Assembly: GCA_964035545.1 (NCBI GenBank)
Contig: OZ037770.1
Coordinates: 4,558,662-4,622,661 of the forward strand
DNA length: 64,000 nucleotides
Source of the DNA: Bugula neritina
Lineage: Eukaryota > Animalia > Bryozoa
Reading direction: 5' to 3'
In this document: positions 1 through 58,661 of the stretch, one piece after another
Layout: each line of letters starts with the position of its first letter
How positions within the stretch are numbered: the stretch's first letter is position 1
Position numbers and translations under genes: made by a program
The notes under the pieces: generated by a model
What the model was told of the DNA's origin: nothing
Seen by the model: only the letters and a program-made list of their open reading frames with translations
Database searches by the model: none

Positions 1-500
1 AGTAAGAAAACTACTTTCTTATATTTATAATGACATCACATTGCAACATAATTGACTCAATCAACCGTATTGTGTAAAGCTCATTAGTAAAAAATCACTT
101 AGTAGATTATATAGTATGTTTGATTTAGGTAATTCAAGTTCTACTTTTAATTATTTTGAAATAAAAGATCTGGTTTTATATTGTAAACCGAAGAGGACAA
201 AAAAATTATTAAATATTGCAACTTTTTTTTTCATGCTCTCCTTTGGTTATCTATCTCCAATTCTCAGTGTAATAGAAGCCAATTTTTATCTTATTCCTGT
301 TCTCAAACAGCCTGTTAATATATTGTTTCATAATTAATTTACAATTCTAAATTACGAATCAACTGGCCTTTAAAGGTGCAACATGTTCCTGCAAGCCGAT
401 GACTTTCCAGAATTGTATTCTCTCATAGTGAAATAATTCACAACTTCTATTTCCTGTCTAGAAACTATAATACATTTATTAGGGTAATTAGTGAGAGGTT

Positions 501-873
501 GTGGCAGAAGTATTTTATTTTACTTGAAATTACTTTAATGCTTTGCGTAGATGTTTCAGAGCTGTACTGTGTTTCTATTTTATGATAAATTGCATGTATT
601 ATGGCACATAAAACAATATTCCTTATAATGATAACATCCATATAGTAGAATATCAGTGTGAACAGTTACTCAGTGATCAGAAGTGTCAGAAGTATTTTAT
701 TTTCACTTCACATTACTTTAATGCCTTATGCAGATGCCACAGAGCTGTAGCCTACCATGTTCCTATTTGCTGATAACTGTATTATGGCACATTATACTAG
801 GAATTTTCTACTCTGTGGTATAAAATACCATTCTTTCTAGTAGAATAACAGTGTGAACAGTTACTCAGTTATC
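501..873. repeat. Diverged tandem duplication (~180-190 bp unit x2), probably intronic
   Basis: Units ~501-678 and ~683-873 share ordered blocks 'cagaagtattttatttt', 'attactttaatgc', 'cagagctgta', 'tgtattatggcacat', 'tagtagaata', 'cagtgtgaacagttactcagt'. Confidence 0.8.
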
Positions 874-1258
874 TGCCATATAGAAAAAGATGATATATAG
901 TATTACATGTAGGTTGTTGTCTTTTATGACAGTACTTAGTACAGATGTAGCACTTTTCTTACCAAATATATACTTACAATTATACTGTTACATTATATAT
1001 CTTTATAAAATACTTAAAATGTTATGCATCGTATATAATATGATACTCGTACATAATCGTAACTTAGACATATTTGTTTTCTTTCCTTAATTAATGTACT
1101 AATTCAAGGTATTGTATATAAACTTGCTATAGTAACTGCAACTTAGTACTATATTATGTGTAATTATTGTTATACTAATATTGGGTATCTTTATGAAAAC
1201 TATTATATCAATTACCTGTATAGCTAGGTCTAATAATAGAAATATTATATATTATTAG

Positions 1259-3261
1259 AATACAGAAATTAAAGAAGTTACAGAAACTCACAATTTCAGA
1301 GAATAAATTCACCAGTCTCCCATCTTCAGTGTGTGCATTGAGTAATCTGTACACACTGGATATATCCGAGAACAGATCCATGACATCCTTGAACCCGGAG
1401 ATACTACAGCTAACACATCTTGGGTCTTTCCATACATATGGATGTGATGCTCTTAAATCTCCTCCACTAGAAGTCTGTAAAAGAGGACTGGATGCTGTGC
1501 GACAATACTACACAGACTTGGTTAAAGGCGCTGGTAGAAATCTTCCATTTGCGACAATAGTCATGCTGGGGAACACCATGGCAGGAAAAACCAGTCTAAT
1601 CAGAACATTACAGAGCACTGACAAGAAGAGAGTTCTGACTGACAGAAGTCCTAATGCAGAGTATGATGAAACTACAAAAGTGTTTATGGTGGAAGAGGTG
1701 GAAGTAAATGGTACAACTCTTCGTTTCATAGATATGGGAGGCCAGGAGGTCTACCATATCACATACCATTTAACACTGAGACAAAATTGCGTACCAGTAA
1801 TTGTAGTCAACATGGAGCAGTATGATAAGATTTCAAATGAGTCTACAGACAGAGAGGCTGTGAGAAAGTTGGCTTTTGACTTCATGTCTCACCTCTATCT
1901 CACTCATCCAACTCTTGGTCCGCCTACCCTTGTCTTCACACACAAAGATAAGTTTTCGAGTGAAATTTTCCAACAGCTTCGAAAAAAGTTTCTTGAAGTG
2001 TCTGAGCAGTTTTGCAAAAATATTCTTGAAGAAGAGAAAAGTTTAGAAGGTGACTTTGCTCAAATTCAACATTTCACTGAATCGGACGGAAAAGTGTTTT
2101 CCAACGACAACATTTATGAGGTTGGGAAATTTGACGAGTACAAGATATTTGAAAAAATCAAAAAATATCTTCTTAAAAGTTGCCAACACTTTGTCAAGTC
2201 ACTTCCAAATGTTTGGGAGGATGTCAACAACAACATTCTGTCCTTGCAGACTTCACATAACACCTTTGATGAATTGTTGGCTGTGATAAACGGAAAGCAG
2301 GATAACATTGAAGCAAAGCAATTGGATCTGATTATCATGTACATGCATGATTGTGGCAAAGTTCTCTGGTATAAACATATTGATGCACTCAGGCCATACA
2401 TATTTCACAAGATCACGGAAATAACCAAGCTACTCTGTGTCTTGTATCATCATGATCCAGATATCTGGCAAAGTAGAGTGGATCAGTTCAAGCCATATTG
2501 CTGCAAAGAAGGAGTGAGGATTGAAAAAGAAGATTTTGGAGATTTTGTGAATTCATTTAGAATCAACGGCTTGATGACGAAATCTCTTCTTGAATATTTG
2601 ATCAGAAAAGAAACTTCGTTCACTGGTGATAATGATGTCGAAATTGCTGTTTGCTTGCTCAGAACATTTCGTTTGTTGTATGGCCCTTTGAATATTGATC
2701 CTGAAGAGTCTTACTTCATAATCCCTCAGTTTGCCAAAGAATCTTACAGCCTCTCCTACACTCAGCCAAAGGAGCTGATGCTTCATACCGACACGCAGTT
2801 TAATGGTCTGGCATTACCGCAGCATGTCTACCATCAGATGACGGTTGGTTTGCTGGAACTATTTGCTGATGATTCTGCCACAATACAGGTAAAGAAAAAT
2901 GGAGCAAATGTCTATCAAGATAGAATATACACACAGCTGATACATGATTATGAATCTAGGAGAGTTTTACTCTACACGTCATCTGATGCAAGTAATATCA
3001 CCAAAGCGTGGGAAAAACTCATTTCAGTCAACAATAACATCCTCAGACATGTGATGGAAACTTGGACTGCTAGTCGCCCAGTCACTGCCTGCATCTGTGC
3101 TCACTGCCTACTGCTAGGTGTTCCGTGCCCTAAAAAGTCTATTCATCCTAAATGGTGTTTTCGCTCCCTGAAGAAACCTTCACCAGTTGTCAAGAAGTGC
3201 AGCGGATCTTCAACAATTTTGTGCAATAATGAGGAAATCCTAAGAGCTCTGATTTTCCCAT
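1259..3261 (+). CDS. Large exon: last LRRs + ROC GTPase + COR domain (MFHAS1/MASL1-like Roco module)
   Basis: LRRs (LKKLQKLTISENKFTSLPSSV; LSNLYTLDISEN), cap LKSPPLEVCKRGLDAVRQYY, P-loop GNTMAGKTS, switch-I T (DETT), G3 DMGGQ followed by Y..TYHL, G4 THKD, COR motif YMHDCGKVLWY, C-terminal CICAHC cluster. Acceptor AG 1257-1258, donor GT 3262. Confidence 0.9.
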
Positions 3262-6249
3262 GTATGTATCACTAATAGTGTTTATTACTATGTTTTTAAA
3301 AATTAAAACTTTTGCCTACCACATAAATTATTTTCATTACTACAAACTCTAAACAAAACCTGCTAATTTTTTTTTAAAGCTGAAAATATTCAAAGAAAAG
3401 GCATTACGTCTCGTGTAGTAACATTCTCGTAAGGGTTCTGCCGCAACTTATATTTTAGCCACCATATAAGTTGATTACAGTATACATAGGAATATGTGAG
3501 CTGGTTGTAGTATATGTAGACTGGGTACATTATATGTAATATGTGAGCTGGTTGTAGTATATGTAGACTGACTGTTTTATTTAGGTGAGGCGTTGTCTGA
3601 GACAGAAACCGATGAGCTGGTGAAGCTATTGACTCAACTCAAACTTCGTAAACAGCAGAATGATGCAACCAGAATTGGTATATCTTTATGATACTCACTT
3701 TATCAAAATCAGCGATCTATCAATGTAGAACTTTATTTACATTGAATAGAAATGTTTTTAAAAGCTGATTTTTTTGTCAAGCGATCAAGGAAATGGCAAT
3801 TTTGCATTACTTCTAATTTTCAAATCCTGGTATTAGCCAATAAAATCATGTGACTGCAGATGATGATGGTGATCTGAGTGATCTCTCTGATGATGACGAC
3901 AATCTGTACCCTGATAAAGAGAATGAGGAAAGCGTGAAGTTAATACAACCCAACCTAAAGACTACCAAAAACCTGAGGCTTAAGAATCTTTTCTCAAATG
4001 CTGAAAAGGTTGGTGTATTAGTTTAGGGTCATAGTTCCTGCCGTTTAAGCATATGTTCACCTTATTCTATGGATTCTTATGTTTGTATAACTTATTCTTA
4101 AACAAAACCTTATAAACACCTGCATTTGTATCAAACTGACACTATTTACTGTTAGCTCTATTATTAGGCCATGTCTGCCTTAAACACGTTTAACTAGACG
4201 TACAAATATGTTAACTATTACTATCATTCATTACAGTGTTTAGTATGCTATTCTAACTATATTTGTATCCAGGTGTTCAGTATGACCAGAAAGAGGGGGA
4301 AAGCTCTGATAATAAACAACAAGAATTTTGTTGAAAGACCGGATTTATGCAGGGAAGGTTCAGATGCTGATGTTGAGAATATGTCTGTCATGTTGAGATC
4401 TCTCAAGTTTGATGTTGAGACACACACAGACCTGACAGCAGAGGTATGATATTATTGTTAGACTGAAAGCAACAGTATTCAAGCGTAGTAGCCTATAGCC
4501 TTCAGTTTATTGAAATGAAACTTGACACTTGAAGCAATTGAAGCAATTGAAGCAATTGAAGCAATCATATGTGACTATTATTTCAGTTTATCAATATCAA
4601 AAATAAGGAGTGTATAGGACACCCAAAAGATGTTTTCTGCTGGTCACAATTTTGTTTCATTTTTTGCACATTTTGAAATAATTATTTCATTCAATTATCA
4701 TAACTTTGTATCAGATATTTAACATAGTTATTTTCAAATTTGCAGGAAATGCTGTCTGCTGTCAAGTCTGAGATAAGAATAGAGAAAAACAATGGCTTGG
4801 GCTGTCAAATACTGGTTATTATGACTCATGGTGGAGAAGATAACTGTATCTATGGAACTGACCTTGAGCAGGTCAACCTTACAGACTTCTATGATTTGCT
4901 CGCTCCTTTGAGTCTGAAGCCTAAACCTACAGTTGTCATCCTAGAAGCCTGCAGTGGAGGTAATCACCCGTTAAGTAAATAACAGTATTTGTCTCGTTTA
5001 GTTGAGTAGTTTCAGTAGCAGAAACATCTCTGTGACTCAGCCATTAAAATTGTATTTATTGACTGTTTTCTTTTAATCTGAATTATTATATAAATTTATC
5101 CCAATACTTCTGTTACAGTAAACATTGAGGTGAATCTAGACAGATCTGGTCTTGCAGCAGCTCAAGAAGAAGAAACTGAAGCTGTCTCTTCTACACACTC
5201 TGAATCTGATGATGATATTGTATATCCTGAAACACCCAGTGTAATAAGACCCATCAGACCTGTCTCACCACCAGCACCTAGAATAGAAGAGCGTTGGACC
5301 AGACTAGATGTTGATAATCTTCTTGTTCTGAAGAGTAACGTCTGCTGTAAGTGTATACTAAATATTGATTGGCTAGTTTTACATGTGCACAGTTGCAGTT
5401 ATTCAGCAAGTTGTCTCTCCTTTATCCAATCTTTTAAACTTGCCTTTAAAAAATTATATGCAAACACTGCTCATTAAAACTGAACAAAATTTTAAAATAT
5501 ACTGAGCTTGCTCTGATTACATCATGCTTTTGGCTGCATTTAATATTATTATAGCATCAAAGAGACATCCTGAGTATGGATCTCCTATGATTAGAGCTCT
5601 AGTATCTTCAATCTACAAACATGCCAGTCACCGTGATCTCTACACCATCTTTCAGCAGGTAAGTTAAAAGCTCAAACGTTTTTTTGCTATTTTAACTTTT
5701 ACGCCAGAAACTATTCGTCATCGTGGCATCTCTTCCATCTCCATGTTCAAACCATCATGCCATTTGAAAGAAACAATTTAAGCTGTTCTGAGTACAAGAG
5801 AAAGTCATTCAGTGCTTTACTTGTTTGAATTGTGGAGTTTAGTCTCTGTTGTTACAGTTTCTTTAGAGTAATGGCTCAGTACTATATTGATAGTTTCTCT
5901 CCTCTTTTAATATGTTCTTGTAGTCTGCTAATAACTGGTCTCATTTATTAAATGACATTACTGTAGCGGACAACTTCAAAAGTTTTACTACTCAGAATTG
6001 TTAAAGTAGGATACAATATTCTACCAGCTGGGAGTTGTACCTTATTACTTTTAGTAGTGAATTGATGAACAGTCTCACTAGTCATTACTTACTCTACAGG
6101 TACAGACTAAACTAGTGAAGAAACTCTATGCAGATGAAAATTCAGAGAGAAGCAGAAATTTGATTGTAATCTGGAATACTCTTCCTTACCGTAAAAGACT
6201 TCACCTGTTTCCTGGCTTTGATGGATTTGGTAAAGAGGCCAAATCTTAA
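1259..6249 (+). CDS. LRR-ROC-COR (Roco) protein fused to a C-terminal caspase domain; 5'-partial spliced gene, >=1036 aa
   Basis: Exons 1259-3261, 3585-3677, 3860-4008, 4273-4443, 4746-4959, 5119-5346, 5555-5658, 6100-6249. All introns are GT-AG with compatible phases (1,1,0,0,1,1,0), giving one open frame ending TAA at 6247-6249. LRR, ROC, COR and caspase motifs occur in order. The start codon and further LRR exons were not found in the window. Confidence 0.85.
4273..6249 (+). CDS. Caspase (peptidase C14A) domain exons of the Roco-caspase gene
   Basis: VFSMTRKRGKALIINNKNF...REGSDAD...LKFDV...DLT; catalytic His in ILVIMTHG (codon 4827); KP.VVILEACSG (Cys codon 4950); acidic linker; p10 DNLLVLKS...SKRHPEYGSPMIRAL...KHA...DL; terminal NTL..KRLHLFPG. 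Confidence 0.9.
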
Positions 6250-6814
6250 CTCAATACATGACTCTATTTGTAATTTGTACAACACTCAGTTTAGGTTTGA
6301 CTAAAATTCTGTGACCATTAAACCTAAACAGATTATAGTGAGTTTGTGTGAATGGGTAATGATTACTTGACAGTCAAATTATCTATCAAATATTTTTGAC
6401 TTTTGTATCTTATTTTGAGTATAGAGCTATATACTGATAACATTTACTTCTGTAGATTAGCTTGTGATGTCATTTCATATTGAATAATCATATTACATGG
6501 TATACGCTGTACTGTCATATTACAGGAATGATAAAATCAGTTTATTTGTGATTTTGTATGTTCTGCCTATATAGATTACTATGTTATAGTATTTAGTATA
6601 ATATGGTTGCAGTTGATTTTCTGTCTTGTAAAACAATAACCATTCCTGCTTATATGGTTTTTACTTGGCCAAATTTGTTATCATTTATACTTTGATGTGA
6701 CACTAAGCGCTGACTATGTTGTTTTAGCACATGTTTTAACTGCTATGCTAACATTATTATGATAATTTCAGTCGCTTGCTAATATCTATCAAAAATTGCT
6801 CTTTACATATTATC

Positions 6815-16900: not shown

Positions 16901-17151
16901 AATCACACACAAAAAGCATAAAATTTAGTGGCCCAAACTCTCACTAGCATCCTTAGATGTCTGGGTTATCATACAGGCTGTATTACTAAACTGCTTTGCA
17001 CTAGAAAGAAACAAGTCAAAGCAAGAAATGTACGCAGGCTTCAGAAACCGCTTTATATAAATACAACTGAAATCTAGATTCAGGGTAGAATGCGCATTGT
17101 ACAGCCTCGCGTCTATAGGCAGTACAACAATATTGCAACCACCAAGAATCC

Positions 17152-17423
17152 TGTTGAATGTGTTGCCATTGTGTTTAGTATTTATTATGAAATACGTTAT
17201 TGATTGCTGATTTAACTTATCGAGCAAACTGACTGACTGATTTAATTAATTGATAATAAAATATTTATTAGAATGAAAAACAGCGTGATGGTTTTGTATA
17301 ATATAAAACGGAAGAGAGAGTAAACAAGTATACAGCGATTCTAGTAAAGCAATTAGTTAGCATATTATCACGTGATTGTCATGAATGTGATTAGCGATAG
17401 GATCGCATGATTGTTTCTCAACA
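17152..17423 (-). repeat. Copia 3' LTR
   Basis: Direct repeat of 21520-21791, adjacent to the PPT. Confidence 0.95.
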
Positions 17424-17430
17424 CGCCCCC

Positions 17431-20400
17431 TCAAGCATGTGATTCGATAGCTAGTAACTCCAGTGCAATTCTGTGATTGGTTTTAGGCAAGCTCTTAGTC
17501 ATGACATCGGCAGGGTTCTCTGCTCCTCTGATGTGTTGGTACGCTATGGTGGTTTGCTCTCTGACAAAGTGGAATCTAATGTCAATGTGTTTGCTCCTCT
17601 GATGTGAGTATGGTTGTCCCTTGGTGAGGGCAATGGCTCCAAGGTTGTCAGTGAAAAGTGTGTTAAGGTTAGGCTGTTTCATCTTGAATGTTTTGCACAA
17701 AGTCTGTAGGAATAGCATCTCCTTTGTGGCTTCGGCTAATGCCATGTATTCGGCCTCGCATGATGATAAGGCCACTGTGGGTTGTCGTCGGCTGTTCCAA
17801 CTTATAGGGGCTCCACCCAGTGTGAATACATATCCTGTAGTTGATCTTCGTGTAGAGGTTTCTCCGCCCCAATCTGCATCCACATAGCCCACTAGTTCTT
17901 GTTGATTGGGAGTGAATCTCAGATTGAATCCTTTTGTACCTTTAAGGTATCGTAGCAGCCGCTTCAAGGCAGCAATATGTGCAGGTCCAGGTCTTTCTAG
18001 GTGTTGGGAGAGCTTCCCAATGATCCATGCTAGGTCTGGACGTGTGGCGGTCATTAGGTATATGAGAGAACCTATAACTTGTCTGTAGGGGTAGTCCTTT
18101 GAACGCTCATATTCGTCGTCTGTTGCTTTTTCTAGTTGTAAGTCCTTTTCAGCAGGGGTATATACAGGGTTGCAATCTGCCATATTGTAGGTGTTCAGCA
18201 GCGTGTCTATGTAGCGCTCCTGTGACATAGTGTACTGGTCCTCATGTCTCCTGAAGTCTATCCCCAGGAACCAGCTTAATTCTCCTCTATCATCCATGTT
18301 AAATTTTTGTTGCATCATAGATTTGGTTTGTGTGATTCTGTTGTCGTCTCGGCAGCAGAGAAGGATGTCATCGACCCAGAAAAGAATTATGATGTTGGCT
18401 GATTTATCTGAAGGGTCCTCTTTTGAGTATAGACAAGGGTCTCCAGCACCAGGTGTGAAGCCTTGCTCCTTGAGGAAAGTGGTCAGTGTTTGGTGCCAAT
18501 TGCGTCCGCTTTGTTTGAGGCCATAAATGGATTTGTTGAGACGACAAGAAAGCTTCCCTTGTTTGTTGGTTTCTTCGTACCCTTCAGGCTGTTGTAGATA
18601 AATTTCCTTATCGATTGGTGCGTTTAGGTACGCTCCTTTAACATCTAGTTGATGTATTTTCATGTTTTCATTTGCTGCTTTCTGTAACAGCAATCTGATA
18701 GATGTGAATCTGGTGGTTGGACTGTAAGTTTCGTCATAGTCAACTCCTTGTATTTGTGAAAATCCTTTTGCTACATATCTAGCTTTATGTTGAGTTTCAC
18801 CTGGCGTTTTTCCCTGTTTGAGGGTATAAACCCATCTGCCCTTGGTCTCTGTCCTGTCTTCAGGTAGCGGCTGGATAGACCAGGTGTTTGAATCACGTAG
18901 GGTGTTTATTTCCTTGTCCATGGCTTTCTTCCAGGCTTCTTTATCTTTTGAATTTACAGCTTCTTGGTAGGACTGTGGTATGTTTGCCATCAGTGAGCAA
19001 GCATAGTCAGTGTCTTCTATGTCATAGTCCTGTAGGTATGTAGGAGGCTTTCGTTTCCGTTCCGATTTACGTGGTTCAGGTTGGTTGGTGGCCTTTGCCG
19101 GATCTGGTGCAGGTTCTTGTGGTATGGTATTCTGAGTACCATTTCTGCTGTTTAGTGCGGGTCCTTGTGGCATGACGTTCATTGCGTCATTTCCGCATGT
19201 TTGTGCAGGTTCTTGTGGCATGGTATTCTGGGTACCATTTCTGCTGTTTTGTGCGGGTCCTTGTGGTATGACGTTCATTGCGTCATTTCCGCATATTTGT
19301 GCAGGTTCTTGTGGCATGGTATTCTGAGTACCATTTCTGCTGTTTTGTGCGGGTCCTTGTGGTATGACGTTCATTGCGTCATTTCCGCATATTTGTGGTA
19401 TGACATTTCTGGATGTAACAATTTTCTGATTAGGGGTAAGTATAAGGTAGCCTTGGGCCTTTGTGTTGACACCAAGATATATGCCGCTTTGTCCGCGGTC
19501 ACTGAGTTTTAACTTATTTCCCTCTGAAAAGAATGTGCATTGGGATCCAAAATTGTGAATTTTCCTCATGTCGGGTAGCGTGCCTGTGAATAACTCATAA
19601 GCTGTCTTTCCCGTCCGTCTCTGGTAGCTTCGGTTTCTTAGGTACTTAGCATGGTCAGCGGCAAAACTCCAGAAAGTCTTGGGGAGATTTGAATCTTTAA
19701 GTAGGCATCGTGCTGTGTCCATTATGGTGCGCCAAGTCCTCTCTGATTTACCATTCTGGTAGGATGAGTAGGGTGCTGTAGTGGTGTGTTTGATTCCCCT
19801 CTCGCGTAGCACGACTTCAAATGGCTGTCCAAGGTACTCCATGCCGTTGTCAGTATGGATCTCCTTCACATTTCCTATAGGTGCCACATCTGCAATGAAT
19901 TGCTTAAGTGCAGTGGTGGCATCACTTTTGTGGCGTATATTGTAGGTGAACAACATACTGGAAAATTCATCTATGAAGTTTATTATGTAGTTTTCTCCTC
20001 CTCTAGCAGTTGGTGTGATGGGTCCGCATAAGTCAGAGTGTACACGTTGTAGAGGTTGTGTAGCTAGTTCAGGTTTATCGTCTTGTTTGTGAGGTTGTTT
20101 GGTGATTTTACTTTCGTCACATGTCTTGCATGCAATTTTTAATTTTGCTCCAGTTATGGTCATACCTGTTGTCACTTTCTCCAGCTCAATTATGTCATTG
20201 GTGTTCATATGACCCAGTGCCCTGTGCCAATCGGGCAGCAATTTTGCGGTGTTTATTGAGTCACCTGTATGGGTTGTCTTGAGGAAGTACAATCTGCCTT
20301 TGGGCATAATTGGAAAAGTTGTCCTGTCGACTGTCAGTATATTTTTCTCTCTAGAGAAATGTACTTTTGCCCCTTTTTGTGTGGCGGCGTGGACTGAAAA

Positions 20401-21537
20401 TAGGCTTGTTGGTATTGTTGGTGCTAGCAAAGCGTCTTTTAGGTGAATCTGCTGCTCCATGTTGTTGTCATCAGTAATAGTAAACTGTGCTGTGCCTTTG
20501 GCTACAGCCAGCTTGTTTGTTTTGCGACCATCTGCCATCTCTATGTAGTGGTTCTCAGGCGTGAAGCTCTTATCAAAACTAATGAAGTTGTTCTCATTGT
20601 TCACCAGATGACTTGTAGCTCCGCAGTCCACCATAAGCAACTGTCCTTCTTGAGATTTATCTTGTGTGGCTATGTTGCATTGGTTTGATGTATTCACAGT
20701 GAAGGCATATGTGGCATTTGCAGATGAAATTTCAGTTTTACTTGTCCTTTTCTTTGTCCTGCAAACTGATTCGATATGTCCAGCTTTCTTGCAGTAGTTA
20801 CAAAATAGTTTGTGCTTTGAGTAACAATCTTTTGTAGAATGATTGCTTTTACCACAAGCAGTGCACTGTTTATCACGTTTGCTAGTGGGTTTGAAATTGT
20901 CTTTTCCTTTAAATACCATGGCTGTAGATTGAGAGCACCTTGCCGACTCAGTAAGGTCAAAGTTGGTTAGAGCTGCTTTGAACTCTGATAGGGTTTGGTT
21001 TTTGTCAAGTTGCGTATGTACTACAACAAAAGGCTGGTAGGATGTTGGTAATCCTTTCATAATCATTGCGATCACCAAATTGTCATTAATATTTTCCCCA
21101 GCAGACTTGAGGCCTGCTGAGTAGTTCTCAGCACGAATCAGGTAATCTGTAATGTCTTCTGTATCATTCATTTTTACAGTTGTAAGTTGTTCATAAAGAG
21201 TTAATACTCTAGGCTTTTGTGTACTTGCATAGTGTTCTTTTAGAATTTTGAATGCTTTCCGTCCATCGTCTTTGGCATCTCTCATCACAAGTTGAAGAGA
21301 CTTTTCGTCTAAAACTTGTACAAGCTCAGCGTAAGCTCGCTTATTCTTTTTGTTGAAGTCAGCAGCGTTATCTTCTCCTTCTTCTTTGGGTAGAAGTGCG
21401 GTGTGTACTCCTTCATCTTGTGTGTACAAGTATGAAGTGAATCTTGTTTCCCAAATTGAGAAATTGTTTGAATCACCATCAAAGAGAAGCCTGTGTTTGA
21501 AGCCACTGGGCCCATAACCTGTTGAATGTGTTGCCAT
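17431..21537 (-). CDS. pol: Copia gag-pol polyprotein, 1368 aa
   Basis: Two CCHC knuckles, protease VDCGAT, integrase WHRALGH..CKTC, VHSDLCGP, HTDNG, SER; RT KARYVAKGFSQ, QLDVKGAYLNA, WVDD; RNase H YVDADW, CEAEY, TDN, ENPAD. Integrase precedes RT, the Copia order. Confidence 0.97.
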   Translation of the reverse strand: MATHSTGYGPSGFKHRLLFDGDSNNFSIWETRFTSYLYTQDEGVHTALLPKEEGEDNAADFNKKNKRAYAELVQVLDEKSLQLVMRDAKDDGRKAFKILKEHYASTQKPRVLTLYEQLTTVKMNDTEDITDYLIRAENYSAGLKSAGENINDNLVIAMIMKGLPTSYQPFVVVHTQLDKNQTLSEFKAALTNFDLTESARCSQSTAMVFKGKDNFKPTSKRDKQCTACGKSNHSTKDCYSKHKLFCNYCKKAGHIESVCRTKKRTSKTEISSANATYAFTVNTSNQCNIATQDKSQEGQLLMVDCGATSHLVNNENNFISFDKSFTPENHYIEMADGRKTNKLAVAKGTAQFTITDDNNMEQQIHLKDALLAPTIPTSLFSVHAATQKGAKVHFSREKNILTVDRTTFPIMPKGRLYFLKTTHTGDSINTAKLLPDWHRALGHMNTNDIIELEKVTTGMTITGAKLKIACKTCDESKITKQPHKQDDKPELATQPLQRVHSDLCGPITPTARGGENYIINFIDEFSSMLFTYNIRHKSDATTALKQFIADVAPIGNVKEIHTDNGMEYLGQPFEVVLRERGIKHTTTAPYSSYQNGKSERTWRTIMDTARCLLKDSNLPKTFWSFAADHAKYLRNRSYQRRTGKTAYELFTGTLPDMRKIHNFGSQCTFFSEGNKLKLSDRGQSGIYLGVNTKAQGYLILTPNQKIVTSRNVIPQICGNDAMNVIPQGPAQNSRNGTQNTMPQEPAQICGNDAMNVIPQGPAQNSRNGTQNTMPQEPAQTCGNDAMNVMPQGPALNSRNGTQNTIPQEPAPDPAKATNQPEPRKSERKRKPPTYLQDYDIEDTDYACSLMANIPQSYQEAVNSKDKEAWKKAMDKEINTLRDSNTWSIQPLPEDRTETKGRWVYTLKQGKTPGETQHKARYVAKGFSQIQGVDYDETYSPTTRFTSIRLLLQKAANENMKIHQLDVKGAYLNAPIDKEIYLQQPEGYEETNKQGKLSCRLNKSIYGLKQSGRNWHQTLTTFLKEQGFTPGAGDPCLYSKEDPSDKSANIIILFWVDDILLCCRDDNRITQTKSMMQQKFNMDDRGELSWFLGIDFRRHEDQYTMSQERYIDTLLNTYNMADCNPVYTPAEKDLQLEKATDDEYERSKDYPYRQVIGSLIYLMTATRPDLAWIIGKLSQHLERPGPAHIAALKRLLRYLKGTKGFNLRFTPNQQELVGYVDADWGGETSTRRSTTGYVFTLGGAPISWNSRRQPTVALSSCEAEYMALAEATKEMLFLQTLCKTFKMKQPNLNTLFTDNLGAIALTKGQPYSHQRSKHIDIRFHFVREQTTIAYQHIRGAENPADVMTKSLPKTNHRIALELLAIESHA
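19108..19405 (-). repeat. In-frame 96-bp tandem repeat (x3; 48-bp subunits) between integrase and RT
   Basis: Encodes QICGNDAMNVIPQGPAQNSRNGTQNTMPQEPA three times. Confidence 0.95.
21506..21519 (-). promoter_or_regulatory. Copia primer-binding site (internal tRNA-iMet fragment type)
   Basis: GGTTATGGGCCCAG directly after the 5' LTR, the same motif as Drosophila copia. Confidence 0.85.
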
Positions 21538-21791
21538 TGTGTTTAGTATTTATTATGAAATACGTTATTGATTGCTGATTTAACTTATCGAGCAAACTGA
21601 CTGACTGATGTAATTAATTGATAATAAAATATTTATTAGAATGAAAAACAGCGTGATGGTTTTGTATAATATAAAACGGAAGAGAGAGTAAACAAGTATA
21701 CAGCGATTCTAGTAAAGCAATTAGTTAGCATATTATCACGTGATTGTCATGAATGTGATTAGCGATAGGATCGCATGATTGTTTCTCAACA
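21520..21791 (-). repeat. Copia 5' LTR
   Basis: Direct repeat of 17152-17423, adjacent to the PBS. Confidence 0.95.
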
Positions 21792-23685: not shown

Positions 23686-24947
23686 TGGAAGCACACCTAA
23701 ACTGTGATCAATACACGCCAGAACAGTTTAGAAATAATATAAAAAATAATTCCAATTCTCTTACTATTTTAAATGTTAATGTACAAAGCCTTCGTAAAAA
23801 TTTTGATTCCCTAGAAACATTTATGTTTAGTGTCCCTAAACCTTTTAATGTTGTTTGTATTACTGAAAGTTTTCTTTATGATAATGAAGTACATAATTTT
23901 CCCATAAATGATTATGTTTTTATAGGTAAGCAGAGACAGAGTAAATGAGGTGGTGTCGGGCCTATGTACGCAGTAGTGATGTGGCTGAAGTCAAGGAAAG
24001 TCGAGCACTTTTTGCAGGCAGCGAATCTTTACATTTGGAGTTAAAGGGTGGTCTCTTTGGGTGCTTTGGGAGTGGTCTTCACCTCACAATCATTTACAGG
24101 CAACCGTCGGCGGACATTGGAGCTTTTCTCTCTGACCTGGAGCAGTACATCAGTTCTTCTAATTTTCCACATCATGTCATACTAGGTGATATCAATATCG
24201 ACACTCTTAAATCTGATCCTGTGAGTACATCTTACCTCAACATCCTATCCTGCTCTCATTTTATAAATTCAATTCAGATTCCTACACGATACGATTCTTG
24301 CTTAGATCATATAAATGTTAATTTTTATGATAAATTCCTAACATCTGGAACAATAACAACAAGCATAGCAGATCACTTGCCTACTTTTATCAAAATAGAA
24401 AATTTAACTGACTATTTTAATATAACTAAATCTACAAATATTAGAAATTATAAGAAAATAAATGAAGAACTATTTTTGAAAGATCTTTCTAAAGTAGACT
24501 GGAACTCCGAAGTATATGCCAAGAAAGATGTGAATTCTAGGTATGACAGTTTCTTTAAAATATTTATGGATTTATGCAATAAACATGCTCCATTAGTAAA
24601 ATTCTCAACAAATTGTCCACGCAAACTTAAAACAAATAAAAGACCCTGGATTAGTGTTGAATTAATTAAGTTGATGAACAAAAGGGATTATGTTTATAGA
24701 CAATCCTTAAATTCCCCTCTAAACTTGAAACTTAAATTTAAACATAAAACTTTAAAAAATTTAGTTACGAAGAATTTGCGTAGATCCAAGACTTCATATT
24801 TTGAATCTTTTTTTGAAAATAATTTAGATTCTAGTAAATGTTGGAAAGTCATAAACGAACATCTAGGAAAAAATCGATCAAAAGGATTAAATGCTCCTAA
24901 AAGTTTAACATCTGAAAATATTACACTAACTGAAGATAAGGACATAG
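23686..24947 (+). pseudogene. LINE ORF2 N-terminal part (APE endonuclease), frameshifted near 23945 and cut by Gypsy
   Basis: ILNVNVQSL, CITES, IYRQP, ILGDINID, SCLDHI, ADHLP, RPWIS. The frame resumes after the Gypsy TSD as EDKDIA|NKYFTSIG. Confidence 0.85.
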
Positions 24948-25253
24948 TGTGGTGGCTCGTAGAGCTACCAGCAGCACAATACGCAAGGTTGCGCATTGAC
25001 CCGGAACGATGTATTAGCCAATTAGCTAAGCTGCTTATGAGTAACAGTAGCAGCTTCGCGCTACTAGCCCAGTTGAAGTTAGTGTAGTGAACTAAATAGA
25101 TGCGTGTATTTTTAACTGTTGTATAACAAACTTTATTATGTATCTTTGTACCTAAATATAACAATACCTACTCGACTTATCACGGTGAAGTCTCTCTAGC
25201 AGTAAACAGACTCTCTTGGTTGCACATCGACCCTAATTCTGGAAATTATAACA
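24948..25253 (+). repeat. Gypsy copy 1 5' LTR
   Basis: TGTGGTGG...TAACA, repeated at 32092-32397. Confidence 0.95.
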
Positions 25254-25254
25254 G

Positions 25255-25272
25255 TGGTGGCAGCGGTGGGAT
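25255..25272 (+). promoter_or_regulatory. PBS complementary to the tRNA-Leu 3' end
   Basis: TGGTGGCAGCGGTGGGAT is the reverse complement of ATCCCACCGCTGCCA-CCA. Confidence 0.85.
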
Positions 25273-25286
25273 AGTGTACATCAAAG

Positions 25287-26155
25287 ATGGAGACTGAAAA
25301 TGCTAGAATGCAACCACCCCCAGTAGAAGGTGAGCGTAGAAATGATGTTAATCCTGTGAATCTTGAGGGAGAAGAAGCTTACAGATATTGCTTGAAAGCT
25401 CCCACCTTTACTGGGTCAGAAGATGTCGAACAGTTTATACAAGAATTTAGAGAGGTAATGGAGATTGCTCAATGGCCGCATAGAGTGGCCCTTATCCAAT
25501 TGTGGAGAGCGTTGACGGAGCAAGCCAAGCCGTACGGAGTGGGAACGGACATAAACGGGATACTGGCTGCGCTGCGGGCCCGTTTTGGCATCTCCGCAAT
25601 AGACGCTAGGACCAAGCTACAGAGATTGTGCCGCACCCCGCGGACCTCGCTGCAAGAACATGCCACAACGATGAAGAAGCTGGCACAGATTGCGTATGGT
25701 GATCTACCAGCACAACATCAAGAGCGTTACACATACGACGCCTTTGTCCAGTCACTAAACGACCTGGGCCTACACCATCAACTTCGAGCTAAAGGGATAA
25801 CCAGAATAGAGGATGCCCTGAAGGCTGGAGAAGCTTACCTGTTGGCTACCCAAATGCATCGAGCGCAACGGAACCCACCAGTAGTTGGAGTCAGTGCTGC
25901 CTGGGCTACGACAGGCCCCGAAGCCCCCCCCCGCTGGAAGCCGATGTGGACCGTATGGTAGAGATGCTGGGACAGCTGGTAACAATTCTGGCCGGCGTTG
26001 GCCCCGGTCAGGCCCTGCGATTGCCACCAACACCTGTGGGGCCGGGCTGGAGTAGTGCTGGTCAAGACCATGGACAGCAAGGACGACCCCAATACCAGGG
26101 GGCGTTAAACTGTCACGGCCCGCGGACGCTCTCCCTCCCCGCGGGCCGCAACTGA
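25287..26155 (+). pseudogene. gag: Gypsy gag, frameshifted in the C-run near 25925
   Basis: LKAPTFTGSEDVEQFIQEF..W capsid-like motif. Comparison with copy 2 shows the frame should continue to ...LNCHGPRTLSLPAGRN*. Confidence 0.8.
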
Positions 26156-26453
26156 AGGGGTATGGTGGGACACGCCGTCATCTGTCCGTACGGACACGAC
26201 GGAACACTCCCCCCGAGTGGCAGGTACCACGCAGGACTAGTAGGCCCGCACAACGGCCCAGTACCTTCTCCCTGCCACTCGCCAACCGGTTTCACCGGTT
26301 ACCTCGGGAGGAAGAGCCCCCCACTGAAATGGAGCCGGAAGGCCCAGTGGAAAGCCCCAAACCCCGCCGGCACCAACCTCGCCGCCATAAACCCTGTAAA
26401 CCACGGGTGAAACCCCCGCCGTCCTACCAATCTAGGACAGCACATGCGGGGGG

Positions 26454-29400
26454 GTGAAAGTACAACCACATGGAGAGAGCTATTTCCTACCCGGAAAGGT
26501 GGCCGGCAACGCCGTCACTTTCCTGCTCGACTCCGGTTGTACTACCAACCTTCTCAGTCGTAAAGTCTTTGAGGCACTGCCCCGCCGGGACAAGGATAGA
26601 GTACGACCGTATACGGGGGAACATGGCACCCTGGCAGACGGGTCACGTATTCCTTTCTACGGTATTATCGAGCTCCCTGGGCGTGTCCGAGACCAGGCTG
26701 TACAGGAGACCTTTGTCATAAGCCAACTGAAGGAAGATGCTATCCTCAGAATGCCCTTCTTGAAGCAACACCAGTGCCGAATAGACTTTAGCAAATTGGT
26801 GGTGCTGATGGGCGGGCGAGAACTTGCCTGTATGGATAAGTTTGGGCGTCCTCTGGTGGGCGGTGTTCAGGTAGTTCGAAACTGCACCGTGCCCGGACGC
26901 TCCAGAGCTACTATCCACTGCCGAGTGAACAGCAACCGGATAGCCAGGCTCAGGGTTGTTGAAGGCGCGCACGAAAGGATCCAACTTGCCAGTAGTTTAA
27001 ACCGACTAACTGAGCGAGGGGAGATCTTAGTGCAGTGTGTCAACCCCTTTACCGAGCCCATTGAGCTCCCAGCTGGGTCAATGGTGGGCTGGTTTCACTC
27101 CATCCAGGAAGAGGATGTGGGCCCGTCGCTGGGTGACGCGACGGAGGCACCCCTTCGACACCCTATTCAGGGACGAGGGGCGGTCCCAACACATCTCCGG
27201 GAGTTATATGAAACAGCCTGTGGCGGCTGCGCGAGTAACAAGGAACACCAAGCTATGGCGAAGTTGCTACGCGACTACGGTGATGTGTTCAGCAGCGGAG
27301 ATCATGACGTGGGGCTGACTGGAGTTGTCAGACACGAAATACCGCTGACTGCAGGGACAGTCCCTGTCCGGCAACCCACACGCAGACTGGGGCCGAAAAA
27401 AGAGAAGGAGGTTAGCCGACAAGTACGGGATGTTCTGGACCGCGGCCTCATAGAGCCCGCCCATAGTGCGTGGAGGTCACCGGTCGTACTGGTCCGGAAG
27501 AAAGACGGCAGTTGGCGGTTCTGTGTGGATTACCGCAAACTCAATAACGTAACCATACAGGACGCCTACCCTCTACCTCGTATTGACGAGTCATTGGACG
27601 CCCTAGTCGGCAGCAAGTACTTCAGTACGTTAGACTTGCTGAGTGGTTATTGGCAAGTCCCTCTGAGTCCCGACGCCCAGGAGAAAGCGGCGTTTATCAC
27701 ACGGGACGGGTTGTGGAAGTGGAAAGTGCTGCCCTTCGGGTTAACCTCCGCCCCAGCCACCTTCCAGAGGCTGATGGAGCAAGTCCTTAGCGGGCTCCAT
27801 TGGAAGACACTGCTGGTCTACCTCGATGATGTCATCGTGATCTCCCCAGACTTCGAGACGCATGTCAGTCGTCTGCAGGAGGTCTTTGAGAGACTCCGAG
27901 GTGCCGGTCTCAAGCTCAAACCTTCCAAGTGCGCTCTATTGCAGCCAGAGGTTAAGTACCTGGGGCATGTTGTCGGTCGAAACGGCGTGGCAACGGATCC
28001 CGAGAAGGTACGGGCAATAGAAGACTGGGTCACCCCCCAAGACTTGACCGGACTCCGGGCTTTCTTGGGGCTGGTAGGGTATTACAGGCAATACATACCA
28101 GACTTTGCGGGCATAGCACAGCCGTTAAATCGGCTCACCGCAAAGGGAGTGACGTGGCAGTGGACCCCAGTCGAACAAGGAGCGTTCGACCGCCTCAAGG
28201 TCTGCCTACTAACGGCGCCCATCTTGGCCTACCCAGACCCCACTCTAGCGTACATCCTCGACACTGATGCCAGTGACCAAAATGTTGGCGCTGTGCTGTC
28301 ACAATTGCAGGCATGCTGAGAGGTAGTAGTAGCCTACTACAGTAAGTCTCTCTCACCCGCTGAACGAAATTACTGCACTACCCGCAAGGAGTTGCTGGCA
28401 GTAATCAAGTCAGTGAAGCACTTCAGACCATACTTATACGGCAGGAAGTTCCGGCTGCGTACGGATCATGCCTCGCTGATCTGGTTGTGCAAGAGAGCAG
28501 AGCCCTCCAGTCAGGTCGCCCGGTGGCTCAAAATCCTAGCTGAATTCTCGTACCAGATCGAACACCGACCGGGCAAGAGACACAGCAATGCGGATGGTTT
28601 GAGCCGCCGACCTGATGGAGGTTGCAAACAGTGTCTCAACATCGAGAGGAGGGATGGAGGTCCCCCGCGATGCGAGTTGGAGACGCTGGTTCATCACGGA
28701 GCACCGTTTGACTGGGACCAGGGTCAACTCAGACAGGAGGTTGACGAGTTCCCCGAGGTTGTACAAAACCTCCGCGCCAACCCTGTACTGGCCGATAATG
28801 TCCGAGAGCTGAAGAAGCTCCAAGAAGAGCTGCCTGGAGTCGTGGCAGACATATATCGGGCCAAAAGGGAAGGGCGACGACCCAGCATGGAACGCATACG
28901 ACAGGGATGCGCCGAGTTCCGGCTATACTGTCAGCGTTGGGACTCGCTGCGGATCGGGCAGGATGGTTTACTGACCATCTCTCTAGCCGCCAACAGCAGA
29001 CATCCAGAGAGGAAGAGGGTAGTCTGCCCCACGGCCATCCGCCGTGAGTTGATTTGGGATACTCACAAACAGGCCCACGCAGGGGTCAAGAGAGTGATCT
29101 CCAATTTATGACTCCGGTGGTATTGGCCACAAATGGAGCGGGACGTCCGACTCAGAGTCAAACAGTGTGAGATCTGCCAGGCCAGTAAGCATGGCCGTCT
29201 CCCTGGTGAAGCGGGACGGCGGAGGCTATATGCTGGAAGGCCCTGGCAAGTAGTCGCTGTAGACCTGGTCGGACCCATGCCCCTGACCCCCAGAGGCAAT
29301 AGTTGGATCTTAGTACTGACCGACCACTTTACTAGGTAGGCGGATGCTCTGGCTATCCCAGATGCGTCAGCCCCAACAGTGGCCAGGGTACTAGACCAAC

Positions 29401-30731
29401 ATGTATTCTGTTATTTCGGTCTCCCCGAACAGATACACTCTGATCAAGGCGCTCAGTTCCAGTCTCAACTGATGAGCGACCTTCGCCACCTCTGGGGAGT
29501 AAATCAGAGCCGGACCACCCCCTACCACCCTCAAGGTAACGGGGTGGTGAAGCGCAATAACCGGATGCTAGGTGATGCGCTCCGGAGTCTCCTCCTTGGA
29601 CGCGGCCAAGGGGAATGGGATACGGTGTTGTCGCAAGTCATGCGTGCATACCCTAGCACCCCACACACCAGTACTGGTGAGACCCCAAACCTCTTGATGC
29701 TCGGGAGAGAGACCTGGGTTCCTGACCATCTTACCTACCACGTTCCAGAGCAAGACAACTCGGTTCATGAGTATGCCAGTGAACTAGTGGAACGGATGAA
29801 GGCCGCACACGATATACTGCGCGAACAGCAGTGGAAGGTGCGACATGAAGATTCCGAGGAACTACCTCTCTACCAAACGACAGATAAGGTGTGGATGGTC
29901 AATTACCGTAGGCGTCGCGGGCAGGCTGACAAATTAAAACCTAAGTTCGTGGGACCCTACGTGATTGTCGAGGCTATGCCCAACCATACGTACAAGATTG
30001 AGCGCTCAGGACAGGTGTCTATCCAGAATGAGTCTTGCTTGAAGCCGTATTGGGCTAGCCCCGACGCAGTGGAAGAAGCCCCCCCGTTGTTGGAGCCCAG
30101 GAGGCAGACAACAACATGCGGGCGACGGCGGCATGGACCTGAATATGAAGTGGTCATACCGCGGGAAGAAAACTTGGTGAGAGAAGAAAGACAGCTTTTA
30201 CCAACAGAAGCATGTCCGCCGCCGCCAAGACTAATTCCATCACTTCCAGAAACCGAGCCGGTTCCGGAAGTGCAAGCCCCCACGGAGGGAGGGGCTCCAT
30301 CCGGAGAACAAGAAGAAGTGACCGCTAACGGTGAAGTAGAGACGCCATTAGAGGCCCCTACTAATAAACCAGGAAGCGTGTCACCCCCCCCCCTAGAACG
30401 GGGACAACGTACGAGGAAACCCCCACCATATTTAAAAGACTTCGTATGTGACTGCATTAAAAGCGGCACGCATGAAAGTCTAGGGGAAAACCGTACGATA
30501 AAATGTTGGAGTTGTGAACCCCACGCAAATATCAACTTTTGCGAGGGCAGAATAGTGGGAGGAATTAATGCGCGTAAAGCAAATAGTTCCGACCTCGTGC
30601 CTCAGAAACGATGCTCAGCCTTTTCTTACGCTGACATCGCCAAAGGCAGACGTATCTCACAACCAGCTCCAATCTTACCAAGAACGTTGAGTATGGACAT
30701 TAATACCGAGTTCACAGGTAAGCCAGTATAA
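26454..30731 (+). pseudogene. pol: Gypsy pol (PR, RT, RNase H, integrase) with premature stops
   Basis: LLDSG, WRFCVDYRKLN, YLDD, LDTDAS, HHCC, VAVD/HSDQG. Stops at 28317, 29109 and 29337; integrase E>K (VVKRNNR). Confidence 0.92.
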
Positions 30732-30748
30732 GTCTTGTATTCCTATCC

Positions 30749-31822
30749 ATGGAAACGGGCTCGATGCCAGTAAATTCTGAACTAATTCATCAGATTGAAT
30801 CAGAATTACTGGGAACCACGTTTCACGTGAATGACGACGAGGACACTGTAATGGCTGACGGTCTGTTAGACCTGGAGCTAGACACTATTCTTGGTCAGTC
30901 CACACATGATTCACTGGTTCCTCGAGTGCATTCTAAAAGTTGTAACTCTCAGGCTAGTAACAGTCGACAGTCACTAGAATTATGTTGTAAAGATCCACCG
31001 CGATCTAACAATAATTCTACTTTTGTAGACACACTCACGCCCGTCTCTCCGGGCATGCCTTCTTTAGAGATGGCGTGGGACCCAGAGCCGGCCCCACCAA
31101 CTTCCACAACCAGACAACTGCCACCCCAGTTAGAAGCAACCTCTAACTGGACCATCCCTGCCACAGAGAAAGAGATTAAGACTCATAGAGGAGATGACAG
31201 TAACCGCGAATGCCGCCTATGTCAGCAGCGGTTTACAACCCATCGTAGGCTGAGAGTCCACCTGCCACAGCATTACATCACAACGTTCTGCCCCTGCGGG
31301 GAATATAGTTACAATCGTGATTATCTACTGCGTCACCAACGCACTATGCAGTGTTTTCAAGGACACGTCTATGAAGTAGACGAATCATCATATCCCGCAT
31401 TCCTTAACGCCATCAGACCCCTCATCACCGACCCAGCTCGACTGTCTCGCCTGGAGCAAGGCTTTCCCTCCCCTCGACCCATCATCTCGGAAACCATGGA
31501 TAAGCCTACAAAGTCAGCTAACTCCCCACCTCTCAGTCCTATACGCCAACCGCATGCACTTCCCCGTGTCGTACTACAGAGGGTAGACACGAAGGCGTAT
31601 ACACTCCCTCCCCCACTTCCATCTTCAGAACGGAAAAGGCACAGGCAGCAGACTTTCTCTCGCTCATCCCCTCTGGCCCGCAACTTACGAGAAATAGAAG
31701 CTAGGGCACACGACCTGGAGCAAGAAGTATATAGACTGGCCCCACGCGTGCATGCTGCATCCAGTGAACTCAGGTATCTACAGGAGTCTATCAAACGCAT
31801 GGGGCGGGCGGCCCACGGTTAA
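30749..31822 (+). CDS. Gypsy extra ORF3: C2H2 zinc-finger + coiled-coil protein, 357 aa
   Basis: CRLCQQRFTTHRRLRVHLPQH (C2H2), then CPC..RH..C finger-like, RKRHR basic patch and a C-terminal heptad helix. Intact and the same length in copy 2. Confidence 0.85.
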   Translation: METGSMPVNSELIHQIESELLGTTFHVNDDEDTVMADGLLDLELDTILGQSTHDSLVPRVHSKSCNSQASNSRQSLELCCKDPPRSNNNSTFVDTLTPVSPGMPSLEMAWDPEPAPPTSTTRQLPPQLEATSNWTIPATEKEIKTHRGDDSNRECRLCQQRFTTHRRLRVHLPQHYITTFCPCGEYSYNRDYLLRHQRTMQCFQGHVYEVDESSYPAFLNAIRPLITDPARLSRLEQGFPSPRPIISETMDKPTKSANSPPLSPIRQPHALPRVVLQRVDTKAYTLPPPLPSSERKRHRQQTFSRSSPLARNLREIEARAHDLEQEVYRLAPRVHAASSELRYLQESIKRMGRAAHG

Positions 31823-32091
31823 CATGAGTCCATCTCCAACTCCATACCACTCCTCCTCTACCTCTCTGTGGCATTCCCTACCAGTACGGTGGCACGTACT
31901 CTACATGTAAATAGGACTTATTACATACCTTGTATCATCCATTGTGCATATTTTTTTATATACATGTATATCTAATCAATTGGCTCTTGTATATACTTTT
32001 ATATTGTTCTCTCTCAGCCCACCGATGTATAAGTTTTTTTTATGTGAATTATATTTTTATCAGAAAGAGGGCTTTCTGCTGGAGGGGGCAG

Positions 32092-32397
32092 TGTGGTGGC
32101 TCGTAGAGCTACCAGCAGCACAATACGCAAGGTTGCGCATTGACCCGGAACGATGTATTAGCCAATTAGCTAGGCTGCTTATGAGTAACAGTAGCAGCTT
32201 CGCGCTACTAGCCCAGTTGAAGTTAGTGTAGTGAACTAAATAGATGCGTGTATTTTTAACTGTTGTATAACAAACTTTATTATGTATCTTTGTATCTAAA
32301 TATAACAATACCTACTCGACTTATCACGGTGAAGTCTCTCTAGCAGTAAACAGACTCTCTTGGTTGCACATCGACCCTAATTCTGGAAATTATAACA
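32092..32397 (+). repeat. Gypsy copy 1 3' LTR
   Basis: Follows the PPT and is followed by TSD ATAG. Confidence 0.95.
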
Positions 32398-44126: not shown

Positions 44127-44254
44127 TACTACTACTACTACTACTACTACTACTACCACTACTACTACTACTGCTACTACTACCACTACCACTACTACTA
44201 CTACTACTGCTACTGCTGCTACTACTACTACTACTACTATTACTGCTACTGCTG

Positions 44255-44324
<70 letters not shown>

Positions 44325-44421
44325 CACTACCACTACTACTACTACTACTACTACTAATAGTACTAGTACTACTGCTTCTACTACTACTCTGATTACAGCC
44401 ACTATGACTACTGCTACTACC
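44127..44421. repeat. (ACT)n microsatellite
   Basis: Long imperfect ACT/ACC/GCT run; the poly-Thr and poly-Val ORFs are artefacts of it. Confidence 0.97.
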
Positions 44422-44551
44422 ACCAGATCAAAATTGTCATTGACACATTGTTCAATACAAGACTAAAGAAATGAATTACTCAAATTTATGAAATAATATT
44501 TTATTTTGGTTCACTTTGCATAGAGAAAATATAAATACTAATGAAATGGGT

Positions 44552-52864: not shown

Positions 52865-53169
52865 TGTGGTGGCTCGTGGAGCTACCAGCAACACAATACG
52901 CGAGGTTGCGTATTGACCCGGAACAATGTGTTAGCCAATTAGCTAAGCTGTTTTATTAGTAATAGTAGCCGCTTCGCGCTACTAGCTCAGTTGAGGATAG
53001 TGTTGTAAACTAAATAGACGTGCGTATCATTACTGTTGTACATTGGATTTTTATTATGTATTCTTGTATTAAATATAACGATATCTACTCGACTTAACTG
53101 GTGAAGTTTCTCTAGTGTTAAATAGACTCTCTTGGTGGCACATCAACCCTAAATCTGAAAACTATAACA
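52865..53169 (+). repeat. Gypsy copy 2 5' LTR
   Basis: Repeated at 59998-60302. Confidence 0.95.
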
Positions 53170-53202
53170 GTGGTGGCAGCGGTGGGATAGTGTATATCAA
53201 AG

Positions 53203-54069: not shown

Positions 54070-54357
54070 AGGAGTATGGTGGAACACGCCGTCGTCTGTC
54101 CGTACGGACACGGCGGAACATTCTACCCGAGTGGCAGGTACCACGCAGGACTACTAGGCCCGCACAACGGCCCAGTACCTTTTCCCTGCCACTCGCTAAC
54201 CGGTTTCAACGGTTACCTCGGGAGGAGGAGCCCGCCACTGAAATGGAGCCAGAAGGCCCAGTGGAGAGGCCCAAACCCCGCCGGCACCAACCTCGCTGCC
54301 GGAAGCCCCGTAAACCACGGGTGAAACCCCCGCCGTCCTGTCAAACCAGGACAGCAC

Positions 54358-58644: not shown

Positions 58645-58661
58645 GTCTTGTATTCCTATTC

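Follow-up and report, generated by a model that had tools for sequence, protein, structure and literature searches.

A one-chain LRR-Roc-COR-caspase gene belonging to a large, mostly tandem gene family of the bryozoan Bugula neritina

We analysed a stretch of 64,000 nucleotides (nt) from the genome of the bryozoan Bugula neritina (assembly of 216 Mb, G000:C6:4558662-4622661), hereafter called the window. The DNA is AT-rich and animal, and its first part carries the 3′ two thirds of a gene that combines leucine-rich repeats (LRRs), a Roco-type GTPase module (Roc followed by COR) and a caspase in one chain. As read from the sequence, the part of the gene lying in the window consists of eight exons at 1259-6249 (+) and ends with a TAA codon at 6247-6249. 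The features are as follows:

1-1258 (+): 3′ end of the ~8.8 kb intron that leads from LRR cassette 14 to exon 1
1259-3261 (+): exon 1, with the last LRRs (residues ~1-88), Roc (~91-262), COR-A (~295-470) and COR-B (~474-667)
1569-1592 (+): Roc motif G1/P-loop, GNTMAGKT, from a motif scan, as are the next two
1731-1745 (+): Roc motif G3, DMGGQ
1938-1949 (+): Roc motif G4, THKD
3585-3677 (+): linker exon 2, 31 codons, charged and helical, without a Pfam match
3860-4008 (+): linker exon 3, acidic and Asp/Ser-rich, without a Pfam match
4273-4443 (+): exon 4, start of the caspase p20 with the S1 arginine in CREGSDAD; Pfam C14, E 1e-10
4746-4959 (+): exon 5, catalytic His (THG, codon 4827-4829) and Cys (EACSG, codon 4950-4952); Pfam C14
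5119-5346 (+): exon 6, inter-subunit linker (acidic, Pro-rich, with Asp clusters) and p10 start, without a Pfam match
5555-5658 (+): exon 7, p10, where SKRHPEYGS is the counterpart of SWRNSKDGS in caspase-3; weak Pfam C14, conserved in paralogues
6100-6249 (+): exon 8, caspase C-terminus and stop codon, conserved in paralogues

Every intron is bounded by GT..AG, and the exon phases (in/out: 2/1, 1/1, 1/0, 0/0, 0/1, 1/1, 1/0 and 0/stop) join all eight exons into a single frame. The stop codon (3273-3275) that closes the long open reading frame (ORF) 1329-3275 sits 12 nt into intron 1, the donor of which is at 3262. The gene itself starts ~17 kb upstream of the window. In the upstream 20 kb, we found 14 cassette exons of 138 nt each, spaced by ~570-600 bp and coding for two 23-residue LRRs per cassette; they share a common acceptor (ttacag) and a common donor and are all of phase 2, which makes them compatible with exon 1. 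The residues that vary among the cassettes are the x positions of LxxLxLxxNxL, i.e., those of the concave, solvent-exposed binding face. Cassette 14 ends ~7,560 nt before the window start, and a tblastn search with a cassette peptide did not find any more of them inside the window. Within the intron from cassette 14 to exon 1, there is a minus-strand gypsy-like retroelement (L011:2800-10000, 7.2-0 kb before the window) with protease, reverse transcriptase and integrase-like ORFs.

The cassettes are preceded by an N-terminal exon of 75 residues (L012:3784-4008), which gave no match to any Pfam domain, including CARD, DED and Death, and shows no hydrophobic stretch by eye. One such exon is found per paralogue, from a few to ~40 kb upstream of each Roc-COR exon, and for this reason we take it to mark the gene start. 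The full product is predicted from the exon sequences to be a cytosolic protein of ~1,750 residues. Just 5′ of the N-terminal exon, ~19 kb before the window, there is a tandem repeat of ~900 nt (L012:1065-1961) with three open frames and LPYTN-like pentapeptides. The next paralogue begins ~5.4 kb beyond the window end.

To characterize the encoded domains, Pfam searches were run on each exon separately, and the fold of exon 1 was predicted, its alignment taking in 56 homologues. In exon 1, Pfam detected LRRs, Roc (E 1.8e-7, above the cut-off) and, weakly, COR-A (E 7.7e-4). The AlphaFold2 model of this exon had a mean predicted local distance difference test score (pLDDT) of 90.8 and a predicted template modelling (TM) score of 0.87. 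A Foldseek search of the PDB with the model gave LRRK1, the LRR-Roc-COR structure of the Chlorobium tepidum Roco protein and LRRK2 as the top matches (E 1e-24 to 1e-16 over ~650 columns), and the isolated COR domain 3dpt matched it with a target TM-score of 0.62-0.66. A PDB sequence search with exon 1 agreed with these structural matches. The G1, G3 and G4 motifs of Roc are intact, and they are kept in the 13 paralogues checked, with the minor variants GKAMAGKT, GNTMAGKS and THID. Exon 1 thus contains what defines a Roco protein, namely a Roc with nucleotide-binding motifs and COR-A/COR-B directly C-terminal to it. A dimer structure prediction, which the original prediction for this locus had proposed as a check, was run on COR-A plus COR-B (exon 1 residues 310-667) and passed its controls: the interface score ipSAE (interaction prediction score from aligned errors) was 0.39 vs. 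0.00 for the best control, with a contact agreement of at least 88% in the homodimer runs and a partner pLDDT of at least 67. In the calibration of the mark used, it was reached by 21 of 30 one-chain-pair proteins and by none of 23 single-chain structures.

The caspase module follows the two linker exons. Pfam Peptidase_C14 was detected in exons 4, 5 and 7 taken singly, and no exon of the gene gave a Pfam match to CARD, DED, death, kinase, NACHT or NB-ARC. The best PDB matches of exon 4 are animal effector caspases, and the exon aligns with the p20 start, including the S1 arginine; exon 5 aligns with CED-3 and caspase-8 with the His and Cys correctly placed. Overall, the best PDB matches of the caspase are caspase-3/6/7, CED-3 and caspase-8, and this copy possesses both S1 arginines together with the His/Cys dyad. 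Exon 6 is 69-95% identical to its counterparts in 11 paralogues.

The splicing was followed in four public sequencing runs from this organism (one is labelled RNA-Seq) by placing RNA-like contigs on positions 1000-6500 at a likeness of at least 90%. The results showed the joints 3261>3585, 3677>3860, 4008>4273, 4443>4746, 4959>5119, 5346>5555 and 5658>6100, all of them GT..AG. The first and the third of these were seen in three runs each and the last one in two, and the first three are those for which the original prediction had called for RNA evidence. The intron-only bins 3392-3575 and 4496-4679 had zero depth in all four runs, and the depth was ~0 before 1184; a small amount of unspliced material appeared in one run. 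Between 26 and 94 contigs per run were at least 99% alike to the locus, most of the placed contigs being 90-99% alike.

The gene has many relatives in the same genome. At least 40 paralogues of the Roc-COR exon exist at a DNA identity of 72-95%; most form tandem arrays on contig C6, and others make up a second cluster on C1. For 34 of these 40, 0.7-7 kb separate the Roc-COR exon from the first caspase exon, which follows it on the same strand, and the remaining six have a more divergent caspase exon 1.4-15 kb downstream. A Pfam search for Roc adds at least 15 loci (on C1, C2, C3, C5, C6 and C7) with open frames of 585-733 residues, most of which adjoin caspase exons, so that the family probably comprises ~55 genes or more. 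A vertebrate origin and a singleton gene were both rejected, as the gene belongs to a set of 50 or more bryozoan paralogues. Independent metagenome contigs from the Joint Genome Institute (JGI) carry the same Roc-COR ORF followed by caspase ORFs, and because they share the arrangement, an assembly artefact was rejected as well.

Thirteen paralogues were fetched in full and searched for the exons with tblastn. The exon order is kept in all of them, and exon lengths, phases and splice sites are kept wherever the exons were found; all eight exons were recovered in eight loci and exon 3 in every one (13/13), exon 2 being missed in the four most divergent paralogues and one to three of the last exons in three loci. 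The ratio of nonsynonymous to synonymous divergence (dN/dS) ranges from 0.19 to 0.29 in exon 1 and from 0.07 to 0.34 in the p20 exons; the linker exons have values of 0.29-0.40 inside the C6/C7 group and of up to 0.68 when compared with the C1 cluster. Since dN/dS is below 1 in all exon groups, all exons are coding and constrained by purifying selection. A pseudogene was therefore rejected, the gene being also free of stops. When the more distant C6 paralogues are compared, dS is much lower in the caspase exons (0.1-0.35) than in exon 1 (0.6-0.8), which suggests that the 3′ module has been exchanged or homogenised.

Taken together, the domain, fold, splice, RNA and paralogue evidence bears out the original prediction of a single-chain LRR-Roc-COR-caspase. 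The eight phase-matched GT-AG exons that it had proposed agree with our direct reading, with the RNA joints and with the paralogues to a degree far beyond chance, and the stop at 3273-3275, which it had placed inside an intron, does lie beyond the donor at 3262. The two short linker exons between COR and the caspase were confirmed by RNA joints and by their conservation in paralogues, and the claim of a complete caspase p20/p10 was upheld by exons 4-8 with the His/Cys dyad and the p10 motif. Pfam searches of each exon likewise support its statement that CARD, DED, death and kinase domains are lacking.

The nearest named proteins are RefSeq models of 850-1,835 residues from another cheilostome, Watersipora subatra (XP_067947674.1, XP_067948342.1 and others), which are called "MFHAS1 homolog" or "uncharacterized". 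Just as in B. neritina, Pfam assigns LRR, COR or Roc, and Peptidase_C14 to one predicted protein there, but the Roc-COR part is only ~30-35% identical and the active site reads QACSG or QACGG. These models are automatic annotations, and the name MFHAS1 is an automatic label; MFHAS1 itself lacks a caspase. Our literature search found no publication on the Watersipora models and no paper describing or testing a bryozoan Roco-caspase family.

The same domain order is known from bacterial conflict proteins, where LRRs, an AP-GTPase (Roc) and COR are followed by an effector that can be a caspase (Kaur, Iyer, Burroughs and Aravind, eLife 2021, PMC8195603; see also PMC7159879). The likeness extends to fast-evolving N-terminal LRRs, a C-terminal caspase and a predicted logic in which a sensor acts through a GTP switch on an effector. 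Unlike these proteins, the bryozoan gene has an animal-type caspase, spliceosomal introns and cassette LRR exons. A protein homologue search with exon 1 returned mostly single-exon metagenome ORFs and one bacterial match that covers 14% of the exon. The animal-type caspase, the introns and the shortness of this match suggest that the likeness arose by convergent domain shuffling and not by common descent of the proteins as wholes, and the first two of them led us to judge a recent transfer of the whole gene from bacteria unlikely.

Among animal proteins, the LRR-Roc-COR core resembles that of MFHAS1/MASL1, LRRK1/2 and DAPK1, where COR-mediated dimerisation is known. Unlike these, the bryozoan protein lacks kinase, ankyrin, WD40 and death domains, has a caspase as its output and belongs to a family that has expanded to 50 or more tandem genes. 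Direct fusion of a sensor or switch domain to an animal caspase, in place of CARD/DED, has precedents: amphioxus has LRRs-caspase and TNFR-caspase hybrids, for which a role as short paths leading from recognition to apoptosis was proposed (Zhang et al., Genome Biol 2008, PMC2575513), and a survey without bryozoans mentions a caspase with a ROC prodomain in the annelid Owenia fusiformis (Krasovec et al., GBE 2024, PMC11463336). Those reports concern one or a few genes, cover them in a single sentence or figure and describe no COR, LRR cassettes or expansion, and the amphioxus hybrids, unlike the B. neritina gene, retain QACxG. In the brachiopod Lingula anatina, XP_013419969.1 is an LRR-Roc-COR-CARD protein; judging by its domains, it looks like a two-component version, the CARD of which could recruit a CARD caspase. 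In view of the bacterial proteins with the same order, the amphioxus LRR-caspase, the Owenia ROC caspase and the Watersipora models, the novelty suggested by the original prediction was too strong. What is new here is an uncharacterised and greatly expanded family of an animal, in which the LRRs come as cassette exons and the active site is unusual.

For this architecture, spliced and transcribed, kept by purifying selection and expanded into a family, the reading that we prefer, with a probability of about 0.6, is an intact one-chain device in which an LRR sensor, a Roco switch and a caspase protease work in an inflammasome- or apoptosome-like manner on the basis of a Roco GTPase instead of a STAND ATPase. 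Roco proteins are known to dimerise via COR, and induced proximity is what activates initiator caspases. A ligand would bind the variable LRR face, and this sensing would alter the nucleotide state of Roc and the COR-mediated dimer. The COR dimer would then bring two C-terminal caspase domains together, as happens with initiator caspases; the caspase would auto-process in the conserved Asp-rich inter-subunit linker, and cleavage of its substrates would lead to cell death or an immune output. It is plausible that COR dimerisation replaces the adaptor platform, the COR homodimer prediction lending modest support to this step. The proposed scheme is like that of NLR inflammasomes and the Apaf-1 apoptosome, in which a repeat sensor, a nucleoside triphosphate switch and oligomerisation lead to proximity activation of a caspase; unlike them, it would have neither a STAND ATPase nor a death-fold adaptor, and the caspase is in the same chain.

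Several observations weigh against this reading. The active-site pentapeptide is EACSG and hence departs from QACxG, and in three of the 13 paralogues checked (EASSG), the catalytic Cys is replaced by Ser. The success of the COR dimer prediction may stem from solved Roco dimers that the model has memorised. No contig or read covers the gene from the LRRs through the caspase, the contigs being short; because such short contigs were placed at 90% likeness, some of the joints may derive from paralogues. Finally, the upstream junction into 1259, across the retroelement-bearing intron, was not seen in the four runs.

The same architecture might also serve in allorecognition between colonies or in tissue turnover (polypide regression, metamorphosis) rather than in pathogen sensing. 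A large, fast-diversifying tandem array, the exchange of modules that is suggested by the much lower dS of the caspase exons than of exon 1 on the same chromosome, and the variable LRR binding face all agree with such a role, and PMC8195603 lists bryozoans as one of the colonial groups that show allo-incompatibility. However, the same features fit pathogen receptors equally well, and we consider this role somewhat unlikely.

The active site raises the question of whether the caspase is a conventional Asp-specific death protease at all or, instead, one with altered specificity or a mainly regulatory, scaffolding pseudo-caspase. The Gln of QACxG normally helps to bind the P1 Asp. In this copy it is Glu, as it is in 10 of the 13 paralogues (seven with EACSG and three with EASSG), Gln being present in one; in the three paralogues of the other chromosome, the motif is EVCSG or ETCSG, and the Watersipora relatives retain Gln. 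As far as can be judged from the motif, the Glu of EACSG may shift the P1 preference or the activity. On the other hand, the His, the Cys and both S1 arginines are in place in this copy, and the p20 exons evolve under strong purifying selection (dN/dS of 0.07-0.34); we regard this alternative as unlikely. The EASSG copies (L017, L019 and L021; G000:C6:5396900-5405900, 6127086-6135086 and 3748500-3757520) have a three-residue insertion before the Ser, and the Roc-COR exon of L021 is in addition interrupted by a stop; these copies may act as decoys or regulatory pseudo-caspases or may be decaying.

It is still less likely that this particular copy is crippled, such that the ~7 kb retroelement in the intron before exon 1 blocks a full-length mRNA, a truncated Roc-COR-caspase or nothing is made, and the RNA comes mostly from paralogues. 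The missing junction into 1259 and the predominance of contigs that are 90-99% alike would suit this explanation. Against it, all coding exons are open, the 14 LRR cassettes and the N-terminal exon among them, 26-94 contigs per run are at least 99% alike, and transposon-bearing introns of such a size are normally spliced. Highly improbable are separate Roco and caspase genes that are occasionally joined by read-through splicing: an internal Met in exon 4 (VFSMTRK) and the want of a whole-gene molecule speak for them, but three of the four runs show that the intron holding the stop after exon 1 is spliced out, the linker exons fit the frame, are conserved and evolve under purifying selection, Roc-COR and caspase are adjacent in 40 of 40 paralogues, and RefSeq models of another bryozoan genus join both parts.

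To see the one-chain Roco-caspase in its genomic context, we turned to six-frame family searches of the genome. They yielded more than 130 matches for Roc and more than 129 for the caspase p20 exon, vs. one partial match for NACHT, four for CARD and none for NB-ARC, with the limit that six-frame searches can miss intron-split domains. Canonical STAND platforms thus seem nearly absent from the genome, and the near-absence of NLR-type matches fits the idea that the Roco-caspase family fills the place of NLRs.

This allows a broader, tentative proposal: cheilostome bryozoans may have swapped the NLR/Apaf-1 platform for a Roco one, with 50 or more intracellular receptors that would combine diversifying cassette LRRs, a GTP-controlled COR dimer and a fused Glu-site caspase. 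They would form an immune or allorecognition class that arose independently of the bacterial LRR-Roc-COR-caspase proteins and converged on them. If true, this would add, beside NLR inflammasomes and the apoptosome, a third route from recognition to caspase activation in animals, and a striking convergence of bacterial conflict systems and animal cell-death machinery. It may also explain how a colonial animal with seemingly almost no NLRs recognizes pathogens or foreign colonies. Moreover, Roc-COR is the module that is mutated in LRRK2 Parkinson's disease, and the family would be a natural system in which the nucleotide state and dimerisation of Roc-COR have a direct enzymatic read-out, the caspase activity.

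Two side observations concern Roc and CARD matches elsewhere in the assembly. At G000:C2:9943461-9945862 (-), a strong Roc match (E 4e-22) is preceded by a CARD match (E 1e-13), which lies 2 kb upstream on this strand; the pair may represent a CARD-Roc gene, i.e., an adaptor-type Roco beside the caspase-fused family. The best Roc/Rab-like matches of the assembly are located on small contigs (e.g., C66:153163-153507, C101:8421-8765, C110:12229-12576, and others on C230, C160 and C42) and contain several in-frame TAA/TAG and almost no TGA. As this pattern is a feature of a ciliate-type code, the contigs probably belong to a protist that lives on the colony rather than to the animal itself.

The rest of the window is rich in mobile elements. 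A gypsy-type long terminal repeat (LTR) element is present in two copies (24946-32389 and 52852-60284), which are 90-96% alike in the segments compared and have their LTRs ~7.1 kb apart. Both copies contain an ORF for protease, reverse transcriptase and RNaseH, an integrase ORF and a third ORF of 357 residues (30749-31822 and 58662-59735), which had no Pfam match in the one copy tested. GC-rich blocks were considered as ribosomal DNA, but this was rejected: RNA families of Rfam were not found in the window, and the blocks are LTR retroelements. A copia-type LTR retrotransposon occupies 17150-21791 (-), with a 1,368-residue ORF covering gag, integrase and RVT_2; its two 274-nt direct repeats are 100% identical, so that its insertion is probably very recent. 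A tandem array of ~400 nt with a period of 9-12 nt lies at 44059-44457.

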